From sequence record MW845759.1: 64,000 nucleotides of DNA; one strand, 5' to 3'. Position 1 is the stretch's first letter, and each line of letters begins with the position of its first letter. The notes under the pieces are model-generated. The model made no database searches. It saw nothing but the letters and a program-made list of their open reading frames with translations, and was not told the DNA's origin. Shown one piece after another: positions 3,860 to 40,153 of this stretch. A program made the translations under genes and the position numbers.

Positions 3860-4246
3860 ATGGGTAGAAAGATTAGCCCGGTGGATGTGGTTCGACTCCA
3901 CCCGGACGACCTTGCCAACATCAAACCGAAATCAGAACTGGATAAGAAATTCCTGACGGGAATTGAGTGGGGCTTTGCTCTGCATCCGGACGAGGTTCGT
4001 AACACACAGCAGCCATCCCTGAAGGGTCCAGTTGAAATTGACTGGCGTACCACTGCAGGACATGAAGATGTTGTGGAGGCGATTAATGCGGTCACCGTTA
4101 GTAGCGAAGACCTGCCAATTGCCGGTCCTGCTGAGCACCTGATTTCACTGCGTCGTTTCATTAACGCACAGGCCGAAGTTGTGCGTAACGGTGAAGCATG
4201 GCAACTCGGTACGGCACTTCACCTGAAGTCGGTATTCGGTGGATGA
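3860..4246 (+). CDS. Hypothetical protein (MGRKISP...)
   Basis: GAGGAG SD precedes ATG 3860. Confidence 0.8.
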   Translation: MGRKISPVDVVRLHPDDLANIKPKSELDKKFLTGIEWGFALHPDEVRNTQQPSLKGPVEIDWRTTAGHEDVVEAINAVTVSSEDLPIAGPAEHLISLRRFINAQAEVVRNGEAWQLGTALHLKSVFGG

Positions 4247-4297
4247 AAAAAGAAAAGACTACTCTCCCGTTGGGGAGAGTAGCTACTCTTATTTTTT
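4246..4297. terminator. Bidirectional terminator between convergent genes
   Basis: CTACTCTCCC-GTTG-GGGAGAGTAG (4259-4282) with an A-tract on the left and a T-tract on the right. Confidence 0.85.
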
Positions 4298-5108
4298 ATA
4301 CTGCGAAGCGACCACCGCTACGGTAGTTATCACGGTTACCTTGGTCATCGTTGTGGATGAGTGCGCGCTTACACACAAGCAGCTGGTCATCGTACGACTG
4401 TCCGGCATCGCGGTACTCTTCCACGAAGTCTTTGAACTTATCGAACGACACACCGTTTTCTAAACGGGCGATGTCCAAGTCCAACGACAGGTGGTTGTAG
4501 ATGTACTGCTTGGTCGCCCACGATGCCAGTTGCGCCACAGCGGGGTAGAACGGTTGTTTAATCTCGTTCAGCTCTGGCGAGAACTTGGTACGCACTTTTA
4601 AACGGGTACCGTACTGGAACATCCCCGGGTCTTTAATCGACACGGTGTTCGGGCCCAGCACAATCACTTCAGAGGAAGTCAGTCGTGGCATCGCGGAGTG
4701 GGAGTTCAGCATTTGTTCGGTACTGGACACTACCCCTGAAGTCGAACCGGTTAAGTACGACCCGGCAGGTGGCATGGTGTAGGCTTGTCCGGCTACTGGC
4801 GTTCCGGCTAAATGGGCAGCGATAATATCTTTGCCGCCTGTCTGCTCTTCCGAAATCCGGTAGATGCGGGTAAACTGGTCGTGCGGGTCTTGCTCGTAGG
4901 TCAACCCCGAAAGTTCGATTTCTTTTAACTGGCCGAATTGGGACAGGTCGGGGATAACAGTATCCTTTAAGACCTTCTCCACAATCTGGTTTTCAATCGA
5001 AGCCGGTGCGCCAAATAAACGCATCCCGGGTTCAATGAAAGTCGCGTCCAGAATCGGTTTCGGGATATTCCGTCGAATCATTCTGAGGCATGCGTCGATG
5101 GCACTCAT
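4296..5108 (-). CDS. Conserved phiKZ-like protein, probably virion/neck-associated (270 aa)
   Basis: Lone minus-strand gene with GGAG SD; function inferred only from composition and context. Confidence 0.6.
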   Translation of the reverse strand: MSAIDACLRMIRRNIPKPILDATFIEPGMRLFGAPASIENQIVEKVLKDTVIPDLSQFGQLKEIELSGLTYEQDPHDQFTRIYRISEEQTGGKDIIAAHLAGTPVAGQAYTMPPAGSYLTGSTSGVVSSTEQMLNSHSAMPRLTSSEVIVLGPNTVSIKDPGMFQYGTRLKVRTKFSPELNEIKQPFYPAVAQLASWATKQYIYNHLSLDLDIARLENGVSFDKFKDFVEEYRDAGQSYDDQLLVCKRALIHNDDQGNRDNYRSGGRFAV

Positions 5109-32729: not shown

Positions 32730-34442
32730 GTGAGGGGCAAGATGTTCGTCATTAACGTCATGCATACCAGTATGGGCTTTCGCATCGAAGTGCCTGTACG
32801 GGTTATCGAATTAGCTATTTTAAAGTTCGCTGATGAAAACTTGCACGCGCCTAAGATGGGGCGCGACCATGGGAGAATAACCGTCGAAAAGGGGGACGCC
32901 TATTACGTACACGTTCCCTCAATGAACTGGTTCTACTTCCACAAGGACTACTTCCATCGCATTAAGCAGATTGTCCTGAATACTGCGATTGAGTACAACA
33001 AGCAAGTGGAGGTGAAGGAACACACCTACCAACGTAAGGAACCGTACAAGTGCGAATTCGATAACTACGGCTTTCAGATGGAGGTAACCGACCCTGAGTC
33101 GCGTTTCTTCTATCAGAACGAAGTGGTGGAAAAAGCACTTGACCCGCTGTACCTGCAAATCATCTTTGCGATTCAAACCGGACGTGGGAAAACCAAGTCG
33201 GCGCAGAAGGTGATGGTAAAGCGCGGCGTACGTACGGTTCTGATTCACCGGCCGACTTACGTTGATAAGTGGAAGTTCGACTGTATTGAAGATGAGTCTG
33301 GGCTGCGGGTAGATGACAAACACGTCTACGTGGCGAAAGGGACGCAGGGTATTTATGACCTGATTGAGGATGGCCGCAGCGGTAAGTTAGACCGGATGGG
33401 GATAAAGGTAGTCATCTTGCCCACTGTCTCCCTGTTTAACTTCATGAAAGAAGCGATTGCAACCATGGCTTCCAGCCCGGTTGACTTCGAGTCGTTCTAT
33501 GATGATATCGGTGTCGGTCAAGTGGTGTACGACGAAGTGCACGAACACTTCTTACTCGTGTACCTCAGCGGGATTCTGTTGAACCCGCCGTACTCACTGG
33601 AGATGTCCGCTACCCTGAAGCCGGGTGCTGCGAAGAAGTTTATCGCTGACCGGTATCTCGAACGTTTCCCTCTACGTTTTCGTGTCTCGGTACCGTATAT
33701 CCCGGTGGTTGATATTCGTGGGCTGTATTACAGCATTGACGACCCGGGCTTTATTCGCCGTGTGGCCAGAATGTCGCCGTACAACCACAAACTGTTCGAG
33801 CAGCAGCTCCTCAAACACAAACTCGAAGATTCGTATTTCTCGATGGTGTTTGATATCCTGAAGCGGTCGTACCTCGATAAGTATGAGTCCGGTCAAAAGG
33901 CGTTGGTGTTCTTTGCTCTGGTTGAGATGTGTGAAGCATTCACGAAGTATGTGAAGCATCGCCTTCGTAACGGAGACGGGCCACCAGGCTTGACTGTGGC
34001 GAAGTACAATGCGGGGGACAGCTACGACGAGTTCATTGCTGCAGACATCGGGGTCTCGACTCCGGGGAAAGCAGGTACGGCAATTGACATACCCGGTTTG
34101 GTGGTCGCTATCGTGACCATTGCTATCGATGACCGTCAGTTGAATGAACAAATTGCAGGCCGCCCGCGTGAAGTGACGAAGTGGGATTTGACACCGAAAG
34201 TGTTCTTCCTGCATTGCAGTGAAATGCCAAAGCACTTGCAGTATTTGGCCTCACGGCAAGAGTCGCTTAAGGAAGTAGTGAAGTCATTTACGACCTCCTT
34301 CTCCCCTTACGTTATAAGGAAAACGCATGCTAGCTCCTCCTTCTCCAGCAGTGCCCCTTCCGCCGTACCAAGGTTTAAGTCTATCAAGTCTCCTCGAAAA
34401 GGTTTTACGGGCTTACCCGGCCGTCGAGGACGTCGTCGTTAA
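32730..34442 (+). CDS. SF2 DExH helicase (phiKZ gp75-like)
   Basis: Motif I QTGRGKT, motif II DEVH, motif III SAT, motif VI QIAGRPRE; start may be ATG 32742. Confidence 0.9.
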   Translation: MRGKMFVINVMHTSMGFRIEVPVRVIELAILKFADENLHAPKMGRDHGRITVEKGDAYYVHVPSMNWFYFHKDYFHRIKQIVLNTAIEYNKQVEVKEHTYQRKEPYKCEFDNYGFQMEVTDPESRFFYQNEVVEKALDPLYLQIIFAIQTGRGKTKSAQKVMVKRGVRTVLIHRPTYVDKWKFDCIEDESGLRVDDKHVYVAKGTQGIYDLIEDGRSGKLDRMGIKVVILPTVSLFNFMKEAIATMASSPVDFESFYDDIGVGQVVYDEVHEHFLLVYLSGILLNPPYSLEMSATLKPGAAKKFIADRYLERFPLRFRVSVPYIPVVDIRGLYYSIDDPGFIRRVARMSPYNHKLFEQQLLKHKLEDSYFSMVFDILKRSYLDKYESGQKALVFFALVEMCEAFTKYVKHRLRNGDGPPGLTVAKYNAGDSYDEFIAADIGVSTPGKAGTAIDIPGLVVAIVTIAIDDRQLNEQIAGRPREVTKWDLTPKVFFLHCSEMPKHLQYLASRQESLKEVVKSFTTSFSPYVIRKTHASSSFSSSAPSAVPRFKSIKSPRKGFTGLPGRRGRRR

Positions 34443-34704
34443 GTTGTGTGAAGACTCGGCCACGCGCCGAGCTTTCCACTATTACATGGTGACTGAACAC
34501 TTTGCCGGTATGCAGATTACGCAGCGGGGCAAGACGTACTACGTCACGCGTGTCAGCAGTATCCGCAATACCGCCGGTTATGAGCAGTATAGTTGGGTGC
34601 TCTGGCACGATGACAAATCCGGTACGTCGGTCGACGAGAACCCGAAGGTTGCTTACCGCCTGTATTCACACAAGTGGTTTGACTGGGTAACCGTTAAACA
34701 TTAA
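34327..34704 (+). CDS. Hypothetical protein overlapping the helicase 3' end
   Basis: AAGGA SD before ATG 34327; ends just before a terminator. Confidence 0.6.
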   Translation: MLAPPSPAVPLPPYQGLSLSSLLEKVLRAYPAVEDVVVKLCEDSATRRAFHYYMVTEHFAGMQITQRGKTYYVTRVSSIRNTAGYEQYSWVLWHDDKSGTSVDENPKVAYRLYSHKWFDWVTVKH

Positions 34705-35405: not shown

Positions 35406-37568
35406 ATGAGTCAGGAAACTGAAAACCACGGCCGCCCAGTATTGGGTGGACCTGTTCACCAGGCCGATGAGATTTTGCCGGCTGCTGAAGACCACGGCTT
35501 CAAAAAGATTGACGAAGAAGATTACGATCCGGAAGCTGCCCGTAAACTGTGGTTAGCTGATCGTGAAAAGAGACGTTTAGCGGCACAGGGAGTTTCAGAT
35601 GGTGGTGAAGGTAGCAATAGTGGGGGGCATGCCTCGCCAAATGCGCGCGTGGTCAATCCAAGCACTCCTGTTAGCCGGGGTGCAGATAGCGACCGAGCAG
35701 GAAGTGGTGGAGGACAGGAAGTCGAGACAACCGTTCACCGACACATCGATCCAATCCCTGAACAGTCTGTTCAGCAGCCCGTGGTCCGAGAAGCTGCCCC
35801 AGCATCCGCCGCACGAATTTCTCCACAACCAGTACATGAAGCTGACCTTGCCCCGGCACAGCCGCAGCATGCGCCGGCCCAAACGCAGGAAGTGAAAGAT
35901 GGCCAACAGCAAAAAGCCCCGCAAGCGCAAAGCGCACAAGTCGTTTTTCAACACGGAGAAGCTGGAGAGGCGGAACGAGTCCAACCAGCTCCATCTGCAG
36001 CAGCAGACCGCCCAGCTGTCCAGCCGACTGCAAACGTTGCGCCATCAGAGTCCGGTGCGGATGACCACGATGAGAACGCGACGCGTCGCGTAGCGTCGCT
36101 TCTGGAATCGCCGGTTCAGCAGGGTGAACGTAGTGAGCTGATGAAACTGCTGGATGATGATCCGGTGGGGATGTTGGCAGGCATGGCGCTGGTAGGGGGT
36201 TTACGTAATCTCGCCCAGTCGTCTACCGGCTTTAACAAGTTCTTCCGTTCGCTGGAACGCAGCAAAGATGGTGCCCCGGTCTTCCGTAATCCGCAAGAAG
36301 AAGATGTCTATAACCGCATTATGCAAATCATGCAGATTGCGTCTCCTTCGATGCAGAACGGTAATCAGGCCCAGTCCGAAGCCGCGCTGCGCGACGATAT
36401 CCAGTGGAAACAGCATCTGGATACCGGCACCGACGAACCGTTTGTCATTAAGAACCACCCCCAACAGGGTGCGGGGCTGATGAAGCTCGTGTACCGTCGC
36501 CAGAATTCCGGTGCCCCGGTCACGGTGTTCCTGCCAGCGTCCGGGTTCTTCATCACCTCGAAGTCTCCGCATGAAAACGACTTCTGTGACTACGACGTGG
36601 CGCAGACCATGGATACCAATCAGGTGGGCCTGTCTACCTTCGGTATTCTGCTGTCAGCTTCATCCGGTCTGTATCTGAAGCACATGGTTAACTTCGCGCT
36701 GAAGTTCGTGGTCGATACCACGTTGGATGTGGGCGGTGGCGATATGCACCAAACCCTGTACAACAAAATCGATGAGCGCGATTACTGGCTGGTTGTCATG
36801 GCGTGTACCATTGCCAAATACCCGGGCGGTATTCCATGGCTGATGGCATGTACTGAACCGCAGTGTACCTTCGAAGAAGAGCAGAAGCTGAACATCGCCC
36901 GTAGCATCCGCTACGCGAACGGCATCTTCTCCCCGTCCCAGCTCGACCTGATTAACCGTCAGCGTAATAAAGAGCCGATGACCTTCGTTGAGCAAGAAGC
37001 GTACCGTAAGGCCCACAAAGTTGACCCGTCGTCTAAATGGGTTGATGGTGACCTCACCTTCCGCTTTGCGCACGCGTCCATTGCGCGTTATATCGACACC
37101 TCTGAAGAGTGGGTGGCCGATATCAACCAGTCCACGACCGAAGCGTTGGGTAACTATGCGACAGAGCAAGAGCGTAACAGCTACATGCGCACTGCCGCAG
37201 AGACCCGACGTCTGACCCGTTATCTGCACTTCATCGAATCAATCACCGGCAAGGCCGAGGGTGACGAAGAGCCGTACGTTGAACGTGACCCGGTGAAAAT
37301 CCGCGAAGTCTTGGTAGCCATGTCTTCTGACCGTGCCTTTGTGTCGCGCTTTGAAGCAGCTATCGAACACTTCAACGAACGTAGCCGTCTGGCCATATTC
37401 GGGTACATGTCGCACAAGTGCCCAGCTTGTGGGGCGGCGACAGGCGAGAAAGAAGGCGCGTTCCGTGGTATCGTTGAGATTTCACCGGACAGACTTTTTT
37501 TCGTGCTCTCTCGAGTGGTGTACGAGATTCAGAAACTCTTAGCAGATCAATACGAAAGTATTGGCTAG
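35406..37568 (+). CDS. Tail/baseplate-hub assembly chaperone-like protein with a long disordered N-terminus (phiKZ gp77-like position)
   Basis: P/Q/A-rich first ~230 aa; FLPASG motif and CTEPQC...CPAC Zn pairs resemble T4 gp26/gp51-type chaperones. Confidence 0.55.
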   Translation: MSQETENHGRPVLGGPVHQADEILPAAEDHGFKKIDEEDYDPEAARKLWLADREKRRLAAQGVSDGGEGSNSGGHASPNARVVNPSTPVSRGADSDRAGSGGGQEVETTVHRHIDPIPEQSVQQPVVREAAPASAARISPQPVHEADLAPAQPQHAPAQTQEVKDGQQQKAPQAQSAQVVFQHGEAGEAERVQPAPSAAADRPAVQPTANVAPSESGADDHDENATRRVASLLESPVQQGERSELMKLLDDDPVGMLAGMALVGGLRNLAQSSTGFNKFFRSLERSKDGAPVFRNPQEEDVYNRIMQIMQIASPSMQNGNQAQSEAALRDDIQWKQHLDTGTDEPFVIKNHPQQGAGLMKLVYRRQNSGAPVTVFLPASGFFITSKSPHENDFCDYDVAQTMDTNQVGLSTFGILLSASSGLYLKHMVNFALKFVVDTTLDVGGGDMHQTLYNKIDERDYWLVVMACTIAKYPGGIPWLMACTEPQCTFEEEQKLNIARSIRYANGIFSPSQLDLINRQRNKEPMTFVEQEAYRKAHKVDPSSKWVDGDLTFRFAHASIARYIDTSEEWVADINQSTTEALGNYATEQERNSYMRTAAETRRLTRYLHFIESITGKAEGDEEPYVERDPVKIREVLVAMSSDRAFVSRFEAAIEHFNERSRLAIFGYMSHKCPACGAATGEKEGAFRGIVEISPDRLFFVLSRVVYEIQKLLADQYESIG

Positions 37569-37957
37569 AGAATGGCAGCTTAAGCCACGAAACCCTTATC
37601 AACACGCTTAAGCTTGACACCACCTCTCTGTTTAAGCGTCGAGATCATCGGGCGGTAACTTACCAAGAGGCGTACGACGAGCTGATGGCATCGTACGATG
37701 CCTCGTTAGGTTTGGACACGGGTCGATTCCATGTGGCGATGTCCAGTCAGGAAGATCCTCTGGCTAACTCGCTGTATCAGATATGGGTGGAAACGTTTAT
37801 TAGGGAGGATGTCTATAAGTATCTGGGGTTAAACTTCCAGCAGTTCTTAGACCAGCCGCGCTGGGTTATTGACATGCAGCTGAAGTCCATCAAACGTCGT
37901 CATCAAGACGAGAGTGCGTTGGCAACCGAGATACAAAACAGCCTTCCGAAAGACTAA
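37502..37957 (+). CDS. Downstream ORF, probably expressed as a -1 frameshift extension of 35406-37568 (track start ATG 37685)
   Basis: Frame is open from 37478; no ATG/GTG/TTG before 37685; slippery T TTT TTC at 37496-37502. Confidence 0.6.
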   Translation, partial: RALSSGVRDSETLSRSIRKYWLENGSLSHETLINTLKLDTTSLFKRRDHRAVTYQEAYDELMASYDASLGLDTGRFHVAMSSQEDPLANSLYQIWVETFIREDVYKYLGLNFQQFLDQPRWVIDMQLKSIKRRHQDESALATEIQNSLPKD

Positions 37958-37960
37958 CAC

Positions 37961-37989
37961 GGTGCCCTTCGGGGCACCTTTCTTTTTTT
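37961..37989 (+). terminator. Rho-independent terminator
   Basis: GGTGCCC-TTCG-GGGCACC followed by a T-tract. Confidence 0.9.
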
Positions 37990-38028: not shown

Positions 38029-38892
38029 ATGAATGATTTATACGACTTCTACGCCAACTGTTTAATCGAAGTACGGCATCCTGACCGTGCTGCGCCGTTG
38101 TGCGAGTTGGTGATGATGGCCATCGATAACGATTATGAACCTGCGCTCGAGCAGATTTATAATTTAGAGATGGATGATGTTGCAGCACACATCGACACGC
38201 TTGAGGGTTGGATTATTAGCTGTGCGGTAGGGTTAGGTCATCGGCTGGGTATCGCTTTTGATATTGACTCGTGCTACCGCAACCCGCGTGTTCCGTTGTT
38301 AGTGTTAAAAGCCGTACTCGAGGACTTAGAGGACTTCGAAGACTACGAGCACCTGCAGGCGATTGCCGAGTCAGGCGAACCGGAAGTGATTATTCTGGAG
38401 AACATGATTCGTTACGTGCGTGCCGATGAGTTCTTCGAAATCGGGACCGTCATTAAACTGATTGAACCGCGCCTGATGATTGTCATTGGTAACTTCCTCA
38501 ATGCCCGTGCCCTGACTGACCAAGCTACCGCGATTGATGATGCGGAACTGGGTCGTATGGCGAAGTACATCCTCGCTTATCCTGAGAACCCGTCAGTCTG
38601 GGCGTTCCAGAATGCGGCACGGACCACGGAACCGAATGTCTTGGCCACCACGCTGGTCTTTGAAGACACCGGGGTACCGGAGGAGCGTCTGCTTGAAATC
38701 TACGCGGTCGGGTTAACGCTGTACGACCACGATAACTTTGCAGACGCTTACACGGCGTTGGAAGAACGTCTGGCAATCATCAATAACGACGGCTTGCCTC
38801 CAATGCCTATCTTAAAATCGGCAGCGGAAGTATTGAAGACGATTTACGAGGTAAATGATGGACAAGCTGCATTATCTGATAGCGGCCTGTAA
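38029..38892 (+). CDS. Conserved acidic protein (phiKZ gp79-like position)
   Basis: AGGA SD; lies upstream of the vRNAP subunit. Confidence 0.8.
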   Translation: MNDLYDFYANCLIEVRHPDRAAPLCELVMMAIDNDYEPALEQIYNLEMDDVAAHIDTLEGWIISCAVGLGHRLGIAFDIDSCYRNPRVPLLVLKAVLEDLEDFEDYEHLQAIAESGEPEVIILENMIRYVRADEFFEIGTVIKLIEPRLMIVIGNFLNARALTDQATAIDDAELGRMAKYILAYPENPSVWAFQNAARTTEPNVLATTLVFEDTGVPEERLLEIYAVGLTLYDHDNFADAYTALEERLAIINNDGLPPMPILKSAAEVLKTIYEVNDGQAALSDSGL

Positions 38893-40153
38893 CAGTCAGG
38901 CATGGAAGCGACTGACATGGCGCATGTCTATCTTCAACGTGTGCCGTTGGCCTGAGGGGGTCACCCCGAAAGCGTACGACCTGAACTTCATTGACGGCGT
39001 TCCGCACTTCTGGAATGTGGATGAAGACTCACTCGGGAACTGGGAAGCGATTGCCGGCACGAAGAAGGACGAAGAGTTGTTCTGGCCGGAAGAAGAGATA
39101 GCCATTAAAGCGGGGGATTATCCGGGACTCAATAAAGACCTGACTACCTCGGCTGGTCGCTACGTCGCCAACTGGATTGTCGTGTACTTCTCGGTGGGCA
39201 CCCGCTTACCCTATCTGGAAGAAGGGAAGTCTTTCCTTGTATACGAGAAAGAATTGTACTCGCGTTGTCTGGCATATGGCACGGATAGCCCTGACGACAA
39301 AGAGGCCCTGCGTCCAAGCCACGTAGCCGCCTTTATACAGGGCCTCAGCGAGATTGCGCCGATGTGTAAGGCGATTGCCCCAACCGGGACACTGCGCTCG
39401 TTACAGACGCACCCAGACCTCTATAAGGTGCGTGATGCGTTGCTTGAGAAACACAAGGACGAGTTAGACGACCCGGCGGTCATCGTGAAGATTCAGAAGG
39501 TGTTGGATGACATGGACACCGAATGGTTGCAAGGCGACCAGTCCATCGAATTCTACAGCTCGAAGAAGTCCCGCATGCGTCGCCGTAAGTTACTTATCAT
39601 GCACGGGATTGAAGCGTCCTTTAAAGAAGGGGGCGACTACACCCTGATTCCGACCTCGCTGATTGAAGGTGGCGACCTGACCAAACTCGTTGAGAAATTC
39701 AACGGCGTACGTGAAGGCTCGTTCTCTCGTGGTGCGGAAACGGCGAAGGGTGGCGAGCAGGTGCGAATCATCCAGATGATCTTCCAGAACCACCGGATTA
39801 CCGATGATGATTGCGGCACGAAACTTACCCATTTGGTGTTCATTAACGAAGCCAATGTCAAACGCTATGTTGGGATGAACATGGTGGAAACGGGTAAGAA
39901 GACGCAATTAACGGAAGAGATGCTCAAGGGCTTGATGGGTAAGGCAATACGCATTCGACGCCCTATCTTATGCCAACGAGGTCACGTTGACACTTGTGCC
40001 GGCTGCTCCAGCGCTGCGAAGTCGAAAGAAGAACGAGCGATTGCCGCGGATATCTCCGGGGCGATGTCAAACGTTATGCTTAACGCGATGGGCGCAATGC
40101 ACGGCCGAGATACCGTGGTGGCCGAATTTAAACCCCGATTCCACATTACCTAA
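38855..40153 (+). CDS. Virion RNA polymerase beta'-like subunit fragment (phiKZ gp80-like)
   Basis: GVREG...RG...TAKGG, DDDCGT and CQ...CAGC Zn motifs of the beta' middle region. Confidence 0.88.
   Translation: MMDKLHYLIAACNSQAWKRLTWRMSIFNVCRWPEGVTPKAYDLNFIDGVPHFWNVDEDSLGNWEAIAGTKKDEELFWPEEEIAIKAGDYPGLNKDLTTSAGRYVANWIVVYFSVGTRLPYLEEGKSFLVYEKELYSRCLAYGTDSPDDKEALRPSHVAAFIQGLSEIAPMCKAIAPTGTLRSLQTHPDLYKVRDALLEKHKDELDDPAVIVKIQKVLDDMDTEWLQGDQSIEFYSSKKSRMRRRKLLIMHGIEASFKEGGDYTLIPTSLIEGGDLTKLVEKFNGVREGSFSRGAETAKGGEQVRIIQMIFQNHRITDDDCGTKLTHLVFINEANVKRYVGMNMVETGKKTQLTEEMLKGLMGKAIRIRRPILCQRGHVDTCAGCSSAAKSKEERAIAADISGAMSNVMLNAMGAMHGRDTVVAEFKPRFHIT

Follow-up and report, generated by a model that had tools for sequence, protein, structure and literature searches.

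A very likely programmed −1 frame change links the phiKZ gp077-family gene of Erwinia phage pEa_SNUABM_38 to the reading frame downstream

Organization of the locus

The window analysed here is a 64,000-nt stretch of sequence record MW845759.1 from Erwinia phage pEa_SNUABM_38. Positions 35406-37568 of its plus strand hold pEaSNUABM38_00040, a frame-0 gene of 720 codons ending in TAG (37566-37568), the product of which is a member of the phiKZ gp077 / PhiPA3 gp074 / SPN3US gp39 family. This product matches the PHROG 8054 profile over its full length (E 3.6e-285), and profile and synteny with homologs of gp078, gp079, and gp080 together place it in the phiKZ gp077 family (PHROG 8054/4585; 962 representatives), an assignment backed, like the synteny, by the notes and gene order in the PhiPA3 GenBank record. 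The first ~235 codons of the gene form a low-complexity stretch and the conserved domain begins at about 36123. An AF2 model of the large protein has a pLDDT of 93, with the last 21 residues modelled as a confident terminal helix. The neighboring genes encode RNA polymerase subunits, a helicase, a DNA polymerase, and proteins of unknown function.

Downstream of the large gene is an annotated ORF of 90 codons (pEaSNUABM38_00041, 37685-37957, plus strand), and the stretch between the two (37569-37684) is annotated as intergenic. No terminator was found between the two ORFs; an intrinsic terminator at 37961-37988 (plus strand) closes the transcription unit 3' of the second, and its stem is also found in CR5, Phobos, and EarlPhillipIV.

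Near the 3' end of the large gene, the in-frame codons CTT TTT TTC (37494-37502) contain a run of seven T's (37495-37501) and, on the near-invariant Phe-Phe codons 698-699, the plus-strand slippery heptamer T TTT TTC (37496-37502). The heptamer is of the form X XXY YYZ, in phase with the gene, and allows re-pairing of both tRNAs. The −1 frame is free of stops from 37478 up to its stop codon at 37955-37957, and its first ATG, GTG, or TTG is the ATG at 37685. Entered at the heptamer, this frame constitutes a plus-strand extension of 151 codons plus stop (37502-37957) that includes the annotated 90-codon ORF. The two frames overlap on the plus strand at 37502-37568, where frame 0 has 21 codons and the TAG and the −1 frame has 22 codons. 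The initial annotation of this DNA had described the heptamer, the open frame at 37478-37957, and the lack of a start codon before 37685, and all of these statements hold. It had also predicted products of 720 and about 850 residues, in agreement with the 720 and 699 + 151 = 850 residues expected here.

No other in-phase X XXY YYZ heptamer on either strand of the 64-kb window both lies in an open stretch of 200 or more codons and has 100 or more stop-free −1 codons after it. Because it is unique in the window and also conserved in relatives, the combination of heptamer and open −1 frame exceeds chance. Phenylalanine is encoded in the window by TTC more often than TTT (660 vs. 398 codons), and TTT is the first codon in only 13 of the 52 Phe-Phe pairs. 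We also considered recoding at the helicase/34327 overlap but rejected it, as that ORF has its own ATG and Shine-Dalgarno (SD) sequence.

Conservation and coding selection in both frames

The close relatives of this phage (the SPN3US/Derbicus/phiEaH2/Machina clade) provided 24 loci with about 15 distinct sequences. The run of seven T's followed by C is invariant in all 24, and the X XXY YYZ phase is kept in 15/15 distinct sequences. Every locus has an open −1 frame, and the frame-0 stop always ends 67 nt past the C, giving a frame-0 tail that is always 21 codons long. The codon immediately 3' of the site is CGT, CGA, or CGC, all of which read as Arg in the −1 frame, as opposed to Val, Glu, or Ala in frame 0. 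Using tblastn, the −1 piece matches 66 phage records from its first residue at 45-52% identity, and in SPN3US the frame-0 and −1 matches overlap by 64 nt in a −1 relation. In 119 homologs, conservation at each of the two Phe columns is 90% or higher.

A more distant set of 16 loci, including a phiKZ-type phage, PhiPA3, and others, carries a run of five to eight T's on the same near-invariant Phe-Phe pair without exception. At 15 of these loci a homologous ORF of 164-234 codons lies in the −1 frame; the exception is RTH11, whose extension is, as deposited, in another frame relation. The X XXY YYZ phase is retained in 12/16 because the codon before the run ends in T, be the amino acid Gly, Ala, Thr, Val, Leu, or Arg. 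Against the TTC preference seen in the window, the first Phe codon is TTT in 12/12 distant loci with the standard Phe-Phe layout, and in two lineages, where the second Phe codon is TTC, six T's suffice for a heptamer. Three distant relatives have no canonical heptamer: PhiPA3 and D6 (G/A TTT TTT) and pVa-21 (T5 only). Homology across the distant family stops at the slip site, and the fused extension is absent from the best 150 of the 962 family representatives. The heptamer and open −1 frame of the initial annotation thus recur in homologs, at 24/24 clade loci, with the −1 ORF at 15/16 distant ones.

Substitution patterns among these sequences show that coding selection acts in both frames. 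In the overlap, synonymous diversity in frame 0 is 0.21-0.23, down from about 0.48; there the second codon position of frame 0 is the most variable class and substitutions fall on third positions of the −1 frame. Pairwise amino acid identity in the overlap is 0.69 for the −1 frame and 0.63 for frame 0. The stretch annotated as intergenic likewise codes in the −1 frame: substitutions at 37569-37684 have a three-base periodicity (0.46/0.30/0.62) and the translation has invariant residues, which accords with the earlier remark that its 39 codons read like protein.

These data bear on another reading of the locus, in which there are two separate genes, the small ORF being translated alone, either from the ATG at 37685 or by reinitiation or coupling past the frame-0 stop, and the open −1 frame upstream of it being incidental. 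The locus is entered in GenBank as two genes, the ATG at 37685 has a weak GAG 3 nt ahead of it, and some lineages (such as D6, Phobos, and FBKp24) have an ATG or TTG shortly after the frame-0 stop. However, a conserved start is absent. The clade has no start codon in common for the −1 ORF, the first canonical start ranging from +36 to +183 nt and the first ATG from +105 to +372 nt, which at three loci is about 123 codons in; a single clade locus has a −1-frame TTG upstream of the T run. In the phiKZ-type phage KEN49 the first canonical start leaves just 86 of the 171 extension codons. Moreover, the most conserved block of the extension is upstream of the annotated ATG, position 1 of the PHROG 7580 profile falls 19 residues upstream of it, and −1 coding selection begins at the first codon past the run, which is upstream of the frame-0 stop. 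We consider independent translation of the small ORF to be very improbable.

It is more improbable still that the layout is artefactual, either because the run was mis-sequenced and the ORF is continuous or because the −1 ORF is open by chance. A continuous ORF does appear in SEGD1, one of the 66 matching records, where a single 795-codon CDS is annotated that has the exact length predicted for the long form. Against this, more than 30 independently sequenced lineages have the two-frame layout, the length of the frame-0 tail is conserved and its terminal helix confidently modelled, and homology of the extension across the phiKZ gp077 family is at odds with a chance open frame. A sequencing error in the T7 run, raised in the initial annotation as a possible objection, is excluded, since the run is identical in genomes sequenced independently between 2012 and 2021. 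SEGD1 itself keeps the seven T's; compared with SPN3US it has one single-base length difference and 21 mismatches, 10 of which are clustered shortly upstream of the run, and no difference downstream. The single ORF in this record looks like a local assembly problem.

Ribosomal slippage as the favored mechanism

The site, the open frame, their conservation, and coding selection in two frames are properties of the sequences themselves. A programmed −1 frame change joining the 720-codon gene to the downstream ORF, as proposed in the initial annotation, is strongly supported by these comparative data and is very likely. The comparisons also strongly support extending it to the whole family of nucleus-forming jumbo phages, the phiKZ type included. 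Three points are inferences: slippage by the ribosome, its occurrence as a minority event, and the function it serves, the last being the weakest step.

We propose that one mRNA would give rise to two proteins with their first 699 residues in common. The majority of ribosomes would stay in frame 0 as far as the TAG at 37566-37568 and produce the 720-residue form ending in the 21-residue helix. A minority, with two Phe-tRNAs on UUU UUC within U UUU UUC, would slip backward by one base and continue in the −1 frame to 37957, producing a form of ~850 residues in which a helical domain of 151 residues substitutes for the last helix. If the protein is a baseplate-hub assembly factor, a fixed ratio of short to long form would serve assembly as in lambda G/GT. 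To this explanation as a whole, comprising a ribosomal −1 slip, a minority long form, and gp077 as a probable baseplate-hub assembly factor, we assign a probability of about 0.68.

Of the features that mark programmed −1 sites, the locus has the in-phase heptamer and a long −1 ORF running from the site with coding selection and no conserved start. No stimulator was found, be it an RNA structure at 5-9 nt past the site or an SD-like element ahead of it. The initial annotation had pointed to a small hairpin, and a 5-bp stem with a 9-nt loop is indeed present on the plus strand at 37509-37527 (TCTCG at 37509-37513 and CGAGA at 37523-37527), beginning 6 nt past the heptamer. Its proposed role as a stimulator did not stand up: no covariation was found in it, every variant weakens the stem, and it is broken in four relatives. 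An alignment fold of the downstream region reaches −4.2 kcal/mol without a covarying pair, and at 15 loci the downstream sequence folds no better than shuffled sequence (z-scores −1.2 to +1.3). Lacking covariation or excess stability, any downstream fold was dropped as a candidate stimulator. A search of Rfam gave no match at the site. An upstream SD-like stimulator was similarly rejected, as the clade shows just a GGA in an invariant Pro-Asp codon pair and the distant relatives share no such element. In E. coli, heptamers without a stimulator yield 2-10 times a 0.055% background (PMC4066793). Because bare heptamers are this weak, the efficiency of the slip may be very low, or another mechanism may contribute.

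The most serious rival is transcriptional slippage, in which phage or host RNA polymerase would add one U on the template A-run so that both parts come to share a frame. It predicts an identical protein outcome by a different mechanism. A pure homopolymer of five to eight T's is present in all lineages, and the frame relation of RTH11, as deposited, is easier to fit in this way. phiKZ-like phages transcribe with their own multisubunit polymerases. The missing ribosomal stimulator adds to the case, given the weakness of bare heptamers in E. coli (PMC4066793). On the other hand, transcription should be blind to phase, yet the phase of the run is conserved (15/15 distinct clade sequences and 12/16 distant loci); two lineages build the heptamer from six T's by using TTC as the second Phe codon, and selection has not favored longer runs. 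Known bacterial sites of transcriptional slippage usually have runs of nine or more, in comparison with which runs of 5-7 (T7 here, T5-T8 in relatives) are short. We regard transcriptional slippage as unlikely and favor ribosomal slippage over it.

Ribosomal slippage at this locus has several known counterparts. As in lambda G/GT and P2 E/E+E', the −1 slip would take place at an X XXY YYZ heptamer that precedes the upstream stop by about 20 codons. Also as in lambda, the C-terminally extended product is predicted to be minor and to share the N-terminus of the short one, the downstream part lacks its own start, and the layout is conserved while the sequence diverges. A strong stimulatory structure is not needed in lambda G/GT. 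In contrast to lambda, where the upstream part is about 140 residues, it is 450-730 residues here; the heptamer is U-only, and the gene does not lie between tube and tape-measure genes. E. coli dnaX (tau/gamma) likewise uses a −1 shift on a homopolymer-rich heptamer to make, in a set ratio, two proteins that share their N-terminal part. There, frameshifting gives the shorter product and is accompanied by a strong SD-like element upstream and a hairpin downstream, whereas here the shifted product would be the longer one and no stimulator was found. In IS3/IS911 orfAB, a short homopolymer-type motif links two overlapping frames, and in some IS elements the same motif acts by transcriptional slippage; these sites differ in having A-rich motifs, usually a pseudoknot or hairpin, and transposase genes.

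A possible role in tail or baseplate assembly

The initial annotation had taken CxxC pairs in the large protein and a helix motif in the extension as marks of a lambda-type tail assembly chaperone. This does not hold up, there being no family link, a protein five times larger, and the wrong neighbors. Searches of Pfam, PDB, and Foldseek gave no link to lambda-type chaperones (Foldseek chaperone matches had E 0.4-2 and a probability of at most 0.13). The large protein is not a member of the lambda G/GT chaperone family, though the recoding layout is the same.

Among named families, only that of T4 gene 26 (PF12322, T4_baseplate) could be linked at all to the large protein. Of 91 gp077-family members, 3 match PF12322 with a best E of 0.0011 (below curated thresholds), making it the only Pfam family matched by more than one member, and 2 match PHROG 150 ‘baseplate hub’ (best E 1.7e-4). 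Foldseek against BFVD gave ‘Baseplate hub assembly protein, T4-like’ (E 2e-4) and ‘Baseplate protein’ (E 4e-20); with predicted structures on both sides, the alignment to BFVD entry A0A6J5KPC0 (E 2e-4) has a TM of 0.49 on the target. The similarity to T4 gp26 is thus weak, at E about 1e-3 in sequence, and Pfam searches with the large protein of the window itself matched neither PF12322 nor chaperone families. T4 gp26 is only about 200 residues long, and T4 gene 26 is said to yield two related polypeptides, the second from an internal start, not a frameshift. T4 gp26 is considered to assist hub assembly as a chaperone or cofactor and not to be a structural part (PMC9024508).

Other searches named no function. 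Neither piece nor the family profiles found anything usable in PDB by sequence, and matches of the extension to primase small subunits (E about 0.7) and MvaT (E 0.12) were put down to chance. A Foldseek search of PDB with the confident model found no solved homolog (best E 0.29), and the extension model (pLDDT 61) matched only unnamed small jumbo-phage ORFs. With the window proteins, Pfam and NCBIfam gave only sub-threshold matches in low-complexity sequence, to MNSV_P7B and DNA polymerase III tau/gamma; the tau/gamma match (E 0.06) falls in the low-complexity N-terminus and is not meaningful.

Because of the weak link to T4 gp26, a role in tail or baseplate assembly is a live possibility, and the phiKZ gp077 family probably consists of virion assembly factors (for the baseplate hub) with a distant relationship to it, this being the weakest step in our reading. 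The gene context of nucleic-acid enzymes counts against an assembly role. More speculatively, the short and long forms may be the pair of chaperones for tail or baseplate assembly in nucleus-forming jumbo phages, with a hub assembly fold like that of T4 gp26 as their basis, a suggestion we regard as doubtful. If true, the G/GT principle would have independently arisen, or been retained, in a second, unrelated family of assembly factors, and factors of the T4 gp26 type would be functional analogs of lambda-type chaperones.

A literature search covering open-access papers and preprints found no published frameshift in a gp077-family gene, in keeping with the impression in the initial annotation that none had been reported for phiKZ-like phages; the proteins called ‘gp77’ in the literature found are other proteins. 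If the frame change is real, the locus is mis-annotated in every deposited genome. Records currently give the extension as a ‘hypothetical protein’ that is truncated and has arbitrary starts; those of phiKZ-type phages mostly leave it unannotated and call spurious small ORFs on the opposite strand. The site would be a rare case of −1 recoding without a recognizable stimulator, or else a rare case in which a phage multisubunit RNA polymerase slips.

The phiKZ-like (Chimalliviridae) phages, a group under intensive study that is also used in phage therapy research, have the gp077 family among their core genes, and the recoding signal offers a concrete way to approach a protein of unknown function. 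Retention of this family-wide signal across very deep divergence (about 13-25% protein identity) indicates a need for both forms and probably for their ratio.

A probable slippery site near the end of the gp077-family gene

The window matches Erwinia phage pEa_SNUABM_38 (MW845759.1, Derbicusvirus), a 224-kb jumbo phage, exactly and with coordinates unchanged. On its plus strand, a large ORF (35406-37568, 720 codons, stop TAG) encodes a homologue of phiKZ gp077, PhiPA3 gp074 and 201phi2-1 gp136 (notes in the PhiPA3 record), and the gene is syntenic with homologues of gp078, gp079, and gp080. Its codons CTT TTT TTC (37494-37502, plus strand) carry a run of seven T's (37495-37501) and the in-phase heptamer T TTT TTC (37496-37502). 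The -1 frame is open on the same strand over 37478-37957, and its earliest ATG, GTG, or TTG is the ATG at 37685, the GenBank start of a 90-codon "hypothetical protein"; the +1 frame is closed. Re-reading the window thus confirms what the initial annotation had seen in the sequence, namely the heptamer, the open -1 frame, its late start, and a downstream hairpin. On both strands of the window, no other in-phase X XXY YYZ heptamer within a long open stretch has 100 or more open -1 codons after it. We found no terminator between the large ORF and the extension (the -1-frame ORF from the run to 37957), and an intrinsic terminator lies 3' of the extension at 37961-37988 (plus strand). We put the likelihood of a programmed change of reading frame at the run above 90%.

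The neighbors of the large ORF are transcription and replication genes. A 125-codon ORF at 34327-34704 shares 116 nt with the end of the helicase gene; it starts at an ATG of its own, and AAGGA lies 6 nt before that codon. It is annotated from 34486 only (72 codons) in the window's record and in its long version in EarlPhillipIV and SPN3US, and its PHROG 9835 match begins at profile position 48. Recoding at this overlap was rejected as a start-site issue, given the ORF's own ATG and AAGGA. For the RNA polymerase beta-subunit gene (38855-40153), the annotated start at 38924 is probably too late; the PHROG 2962 match runs from profile position 23, and relatives start ∼22 codons earlier, into the preceding gene.

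Conservation of the run and the extension

The -1 piece alone (37502-37954) has tblastn matches in 66 phage records, beginning at query residue 1 (the run) in essentially all of them, with 45-52% identity beyond the genus. In SPN3US (gp39/gp40), the large-protein match overlaps the -1-piece match by 64 nt in a -1 relation. Our sample of close and mid-range relatives comprised 24 loci (∼15 distinct sequences) from Derbicusvirus, Seoulvirus, Erskinevirus, Machinavirus, and IMG/VR contigs. All 24 have T7 followed by C at the run, an open -1 frame, and a frame-0 TAG stop ending exactly 67 nt past the run's C; the heptamer and open frame on which the initial annotation built its proposal are conserved in every locus of this sample. 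The first canonical -1-frame start varies from +36 to +183 nt (one locus has it upstream of the run) and the first ATG from +105 to +372 nt, and annotators have therefore picked differing starts. The best-conserved block of the extension sits in the stretch annotated as intergenic, and the start of the small protein's PHROG profile precedes the annotated ATG (37685) by 19 residues.

The large protein has 205 tblastn matches among phages and 962 representatives in a 50%-clustered protein library. Homology within the family stops at the slip site (query position ∼462-465 of 481), and none of the 150 best matches carries a fused extension. More distant relatives were sampled at 16 loci, three on metagenomic contigs and the others from 13 phage genera (phiKZ-type KEN49, PhiPA3, D6, Simmy50, SA002, FBKp24, Haymo, Xoo-sp14, RsoM3USA, Aeromonas D3, Proteus 10, Vibrio pVa-21, and RTH11). 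Every locus has a run of five to eight T's on the same Phe-Phe, both columns of which are at least 90% conserved among 119 homologues. Each also has a counterpart of the window's extension, a homologous ORF 164-234 codons long that spans from the run to beyond the frame-0 stop (in the -1 frame in 15/16). Where the distant loci have the standard Phe-Phe layout (12 loci), TTT encodes the first Phe, although in the window TTC is the more frequent Phe codon and only 13 of 52 Phe-Phe pairs open with TTT. Six different amino acids are encoded just 5' of the run by a codon with a final T, which preserves the heptamer phase in 12 of the 16 loci; PhiPA3 and D6 (G or A at the first position), pVa-21 (T5), and RTH11 depart from it. 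In frame 0, Thr-Leu follows Phe-Phe in 10 of 15 distant tails compared, which places the short, frame-0 product under selection as well.

The KEN49 record annotates just the last 45 of 171 extension codons. Two small opposite-strand ORFs annotated inside its -1-frame extension region (3893-4391 of locus L028) are probably spurious gene calls.

Two records stand apart. In the deposited sequence of Xanthomonas phage RTH11 (OQ790161.1), there is a single frame discrepancy at the homopolymer: the extension is in a frame relation to the upstream ORF unlike that of all other relatives, and the annotated large ORF continues for 68 extra codons. Either a miscall or real variation may underlie it. Enterobacteria phage SEGD1 (KU726251.1), which shares the species Seoulvirus SPN3US with phage SPN3US, retains T7 and has both parts under one 795-codon CDS, exactly the predicted length of the long, shifted product. 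Relative to SPN3US, its gene carries 21 mismatches and one single-base length difference. The latter and 10 of the former lie close together a short way upstream of the run, and downstream of it there are none. We read the single CDS as a local assembly problem, a natural fused variant being possible.

Coding in the overlap and mechanism of the probable frame change

Approximately 30 nt past the run are nearly invariant across genera, though the proteins are only ∼45% identical. The first variable column past the site (CGT/CGA/CGC) gives Arg throughout in the -1 frame and Val, Glu, or Ala in frame 0. Frame-0 synonymous diversity is 0.385-0.587 upstream (20 ten-codon windows) versus 0.21-0.23 past the site (two windows). 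The most variable column class of the overlap is the frame-0 second position, equivalent to the -1-frame third position; amino-acid identity between pairs is highest for the -1 frame (0.69), followed by frame 0 (0.63) and the third frame (0.50). Past the frame-0 stop, -1-frame substitutions show ordinary three-base periodicity. From these signatures of diversity and periodicity, we infer that both frames are translated from the run onward.

The hairpin TCTCG-N9-CGAGA of the initial annotation exists at 37509-37527 (plus strand) and its pairing is intact in 92% of cells, but there is no covariation and all six variant cells disrupt the pairing. The alignment past the run folds at -4.2 kcal/mol with no compensatory pairs, the window's 98 nt past the run fold no more stably than shuffled sequence (z = 0.12), 15 loci share no common structure (z from -1.2 to +1.3), and an Rfam search gave no match. 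Because no ribosomal stimulator was found near the run, bare heptamers are weak in E. coli, frameshifting at only 2-10 times background (PMC4066793), and the RNA polymerases of these phages are their own, we retain transcriptional slippage at the run as an unlikely alternative. The codon phase of the run is conserved, however, and in two lineages six T's alone suffice for the heptamer; for these reasons we favor ribosomal -1 slippage as the probable mechanism.

The large protein and its two predicted forms

An AlphaFold2 model of residues 240-720, built with a 119-sequence alignment, has a pLDDT of 93 and a pTM of 0.92. We found no solved homologue, the best Foldseek match of the model (m150026d453fa) in the PDB having an E value of 0.29, and the conserved domain (36123-37502) is a candidate new fold on the basis of the model. 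It contains two near-invariant Cys pairs (model residues 243/248 and 433/436) and, as modeled, possibly a zinc site. Residues 1 to ∼235 (35406-36120) form a low-complexity segment enriched in Ala, Gln, Pro, and Glu, which distant members (453-731 residues) lack or have in strongly diverged form; this segment caused an NCBIfam tau/gamma match, which we rejected as spurious.

The initial annotation likened the protein to the lambda G/GT chaperones, but the protein falls outside their families. Its sole named links are a BFVD match of the model to "Baseplate hub assembly protein, T4-like" (E = 2e-4) and weak matches to PF12322 (3/91 relatives) and PHROG 150 "baseplate hub" (2/91), weak but mutually consistent pointers. 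Two GenBank records annotate the same baseplate hub guess. T4 gp26 is viewed as a hub assembly chaperone or cofactor (PMC9024508).

As the initial annotation supposed for phiKZ-like phages, no prior report of gp077-family recoding was found in the searchable literature, which covers few subscription journals. An all-helical structure is predicted for the extension (pLDDT 61 overall, ∼80 in the last 65 residues). Every search and fold took the large protein and the extension as separate sequences. In the model of the large protein, Phe-Phe starts the last helix, so the long form would swap this helix for the extension.
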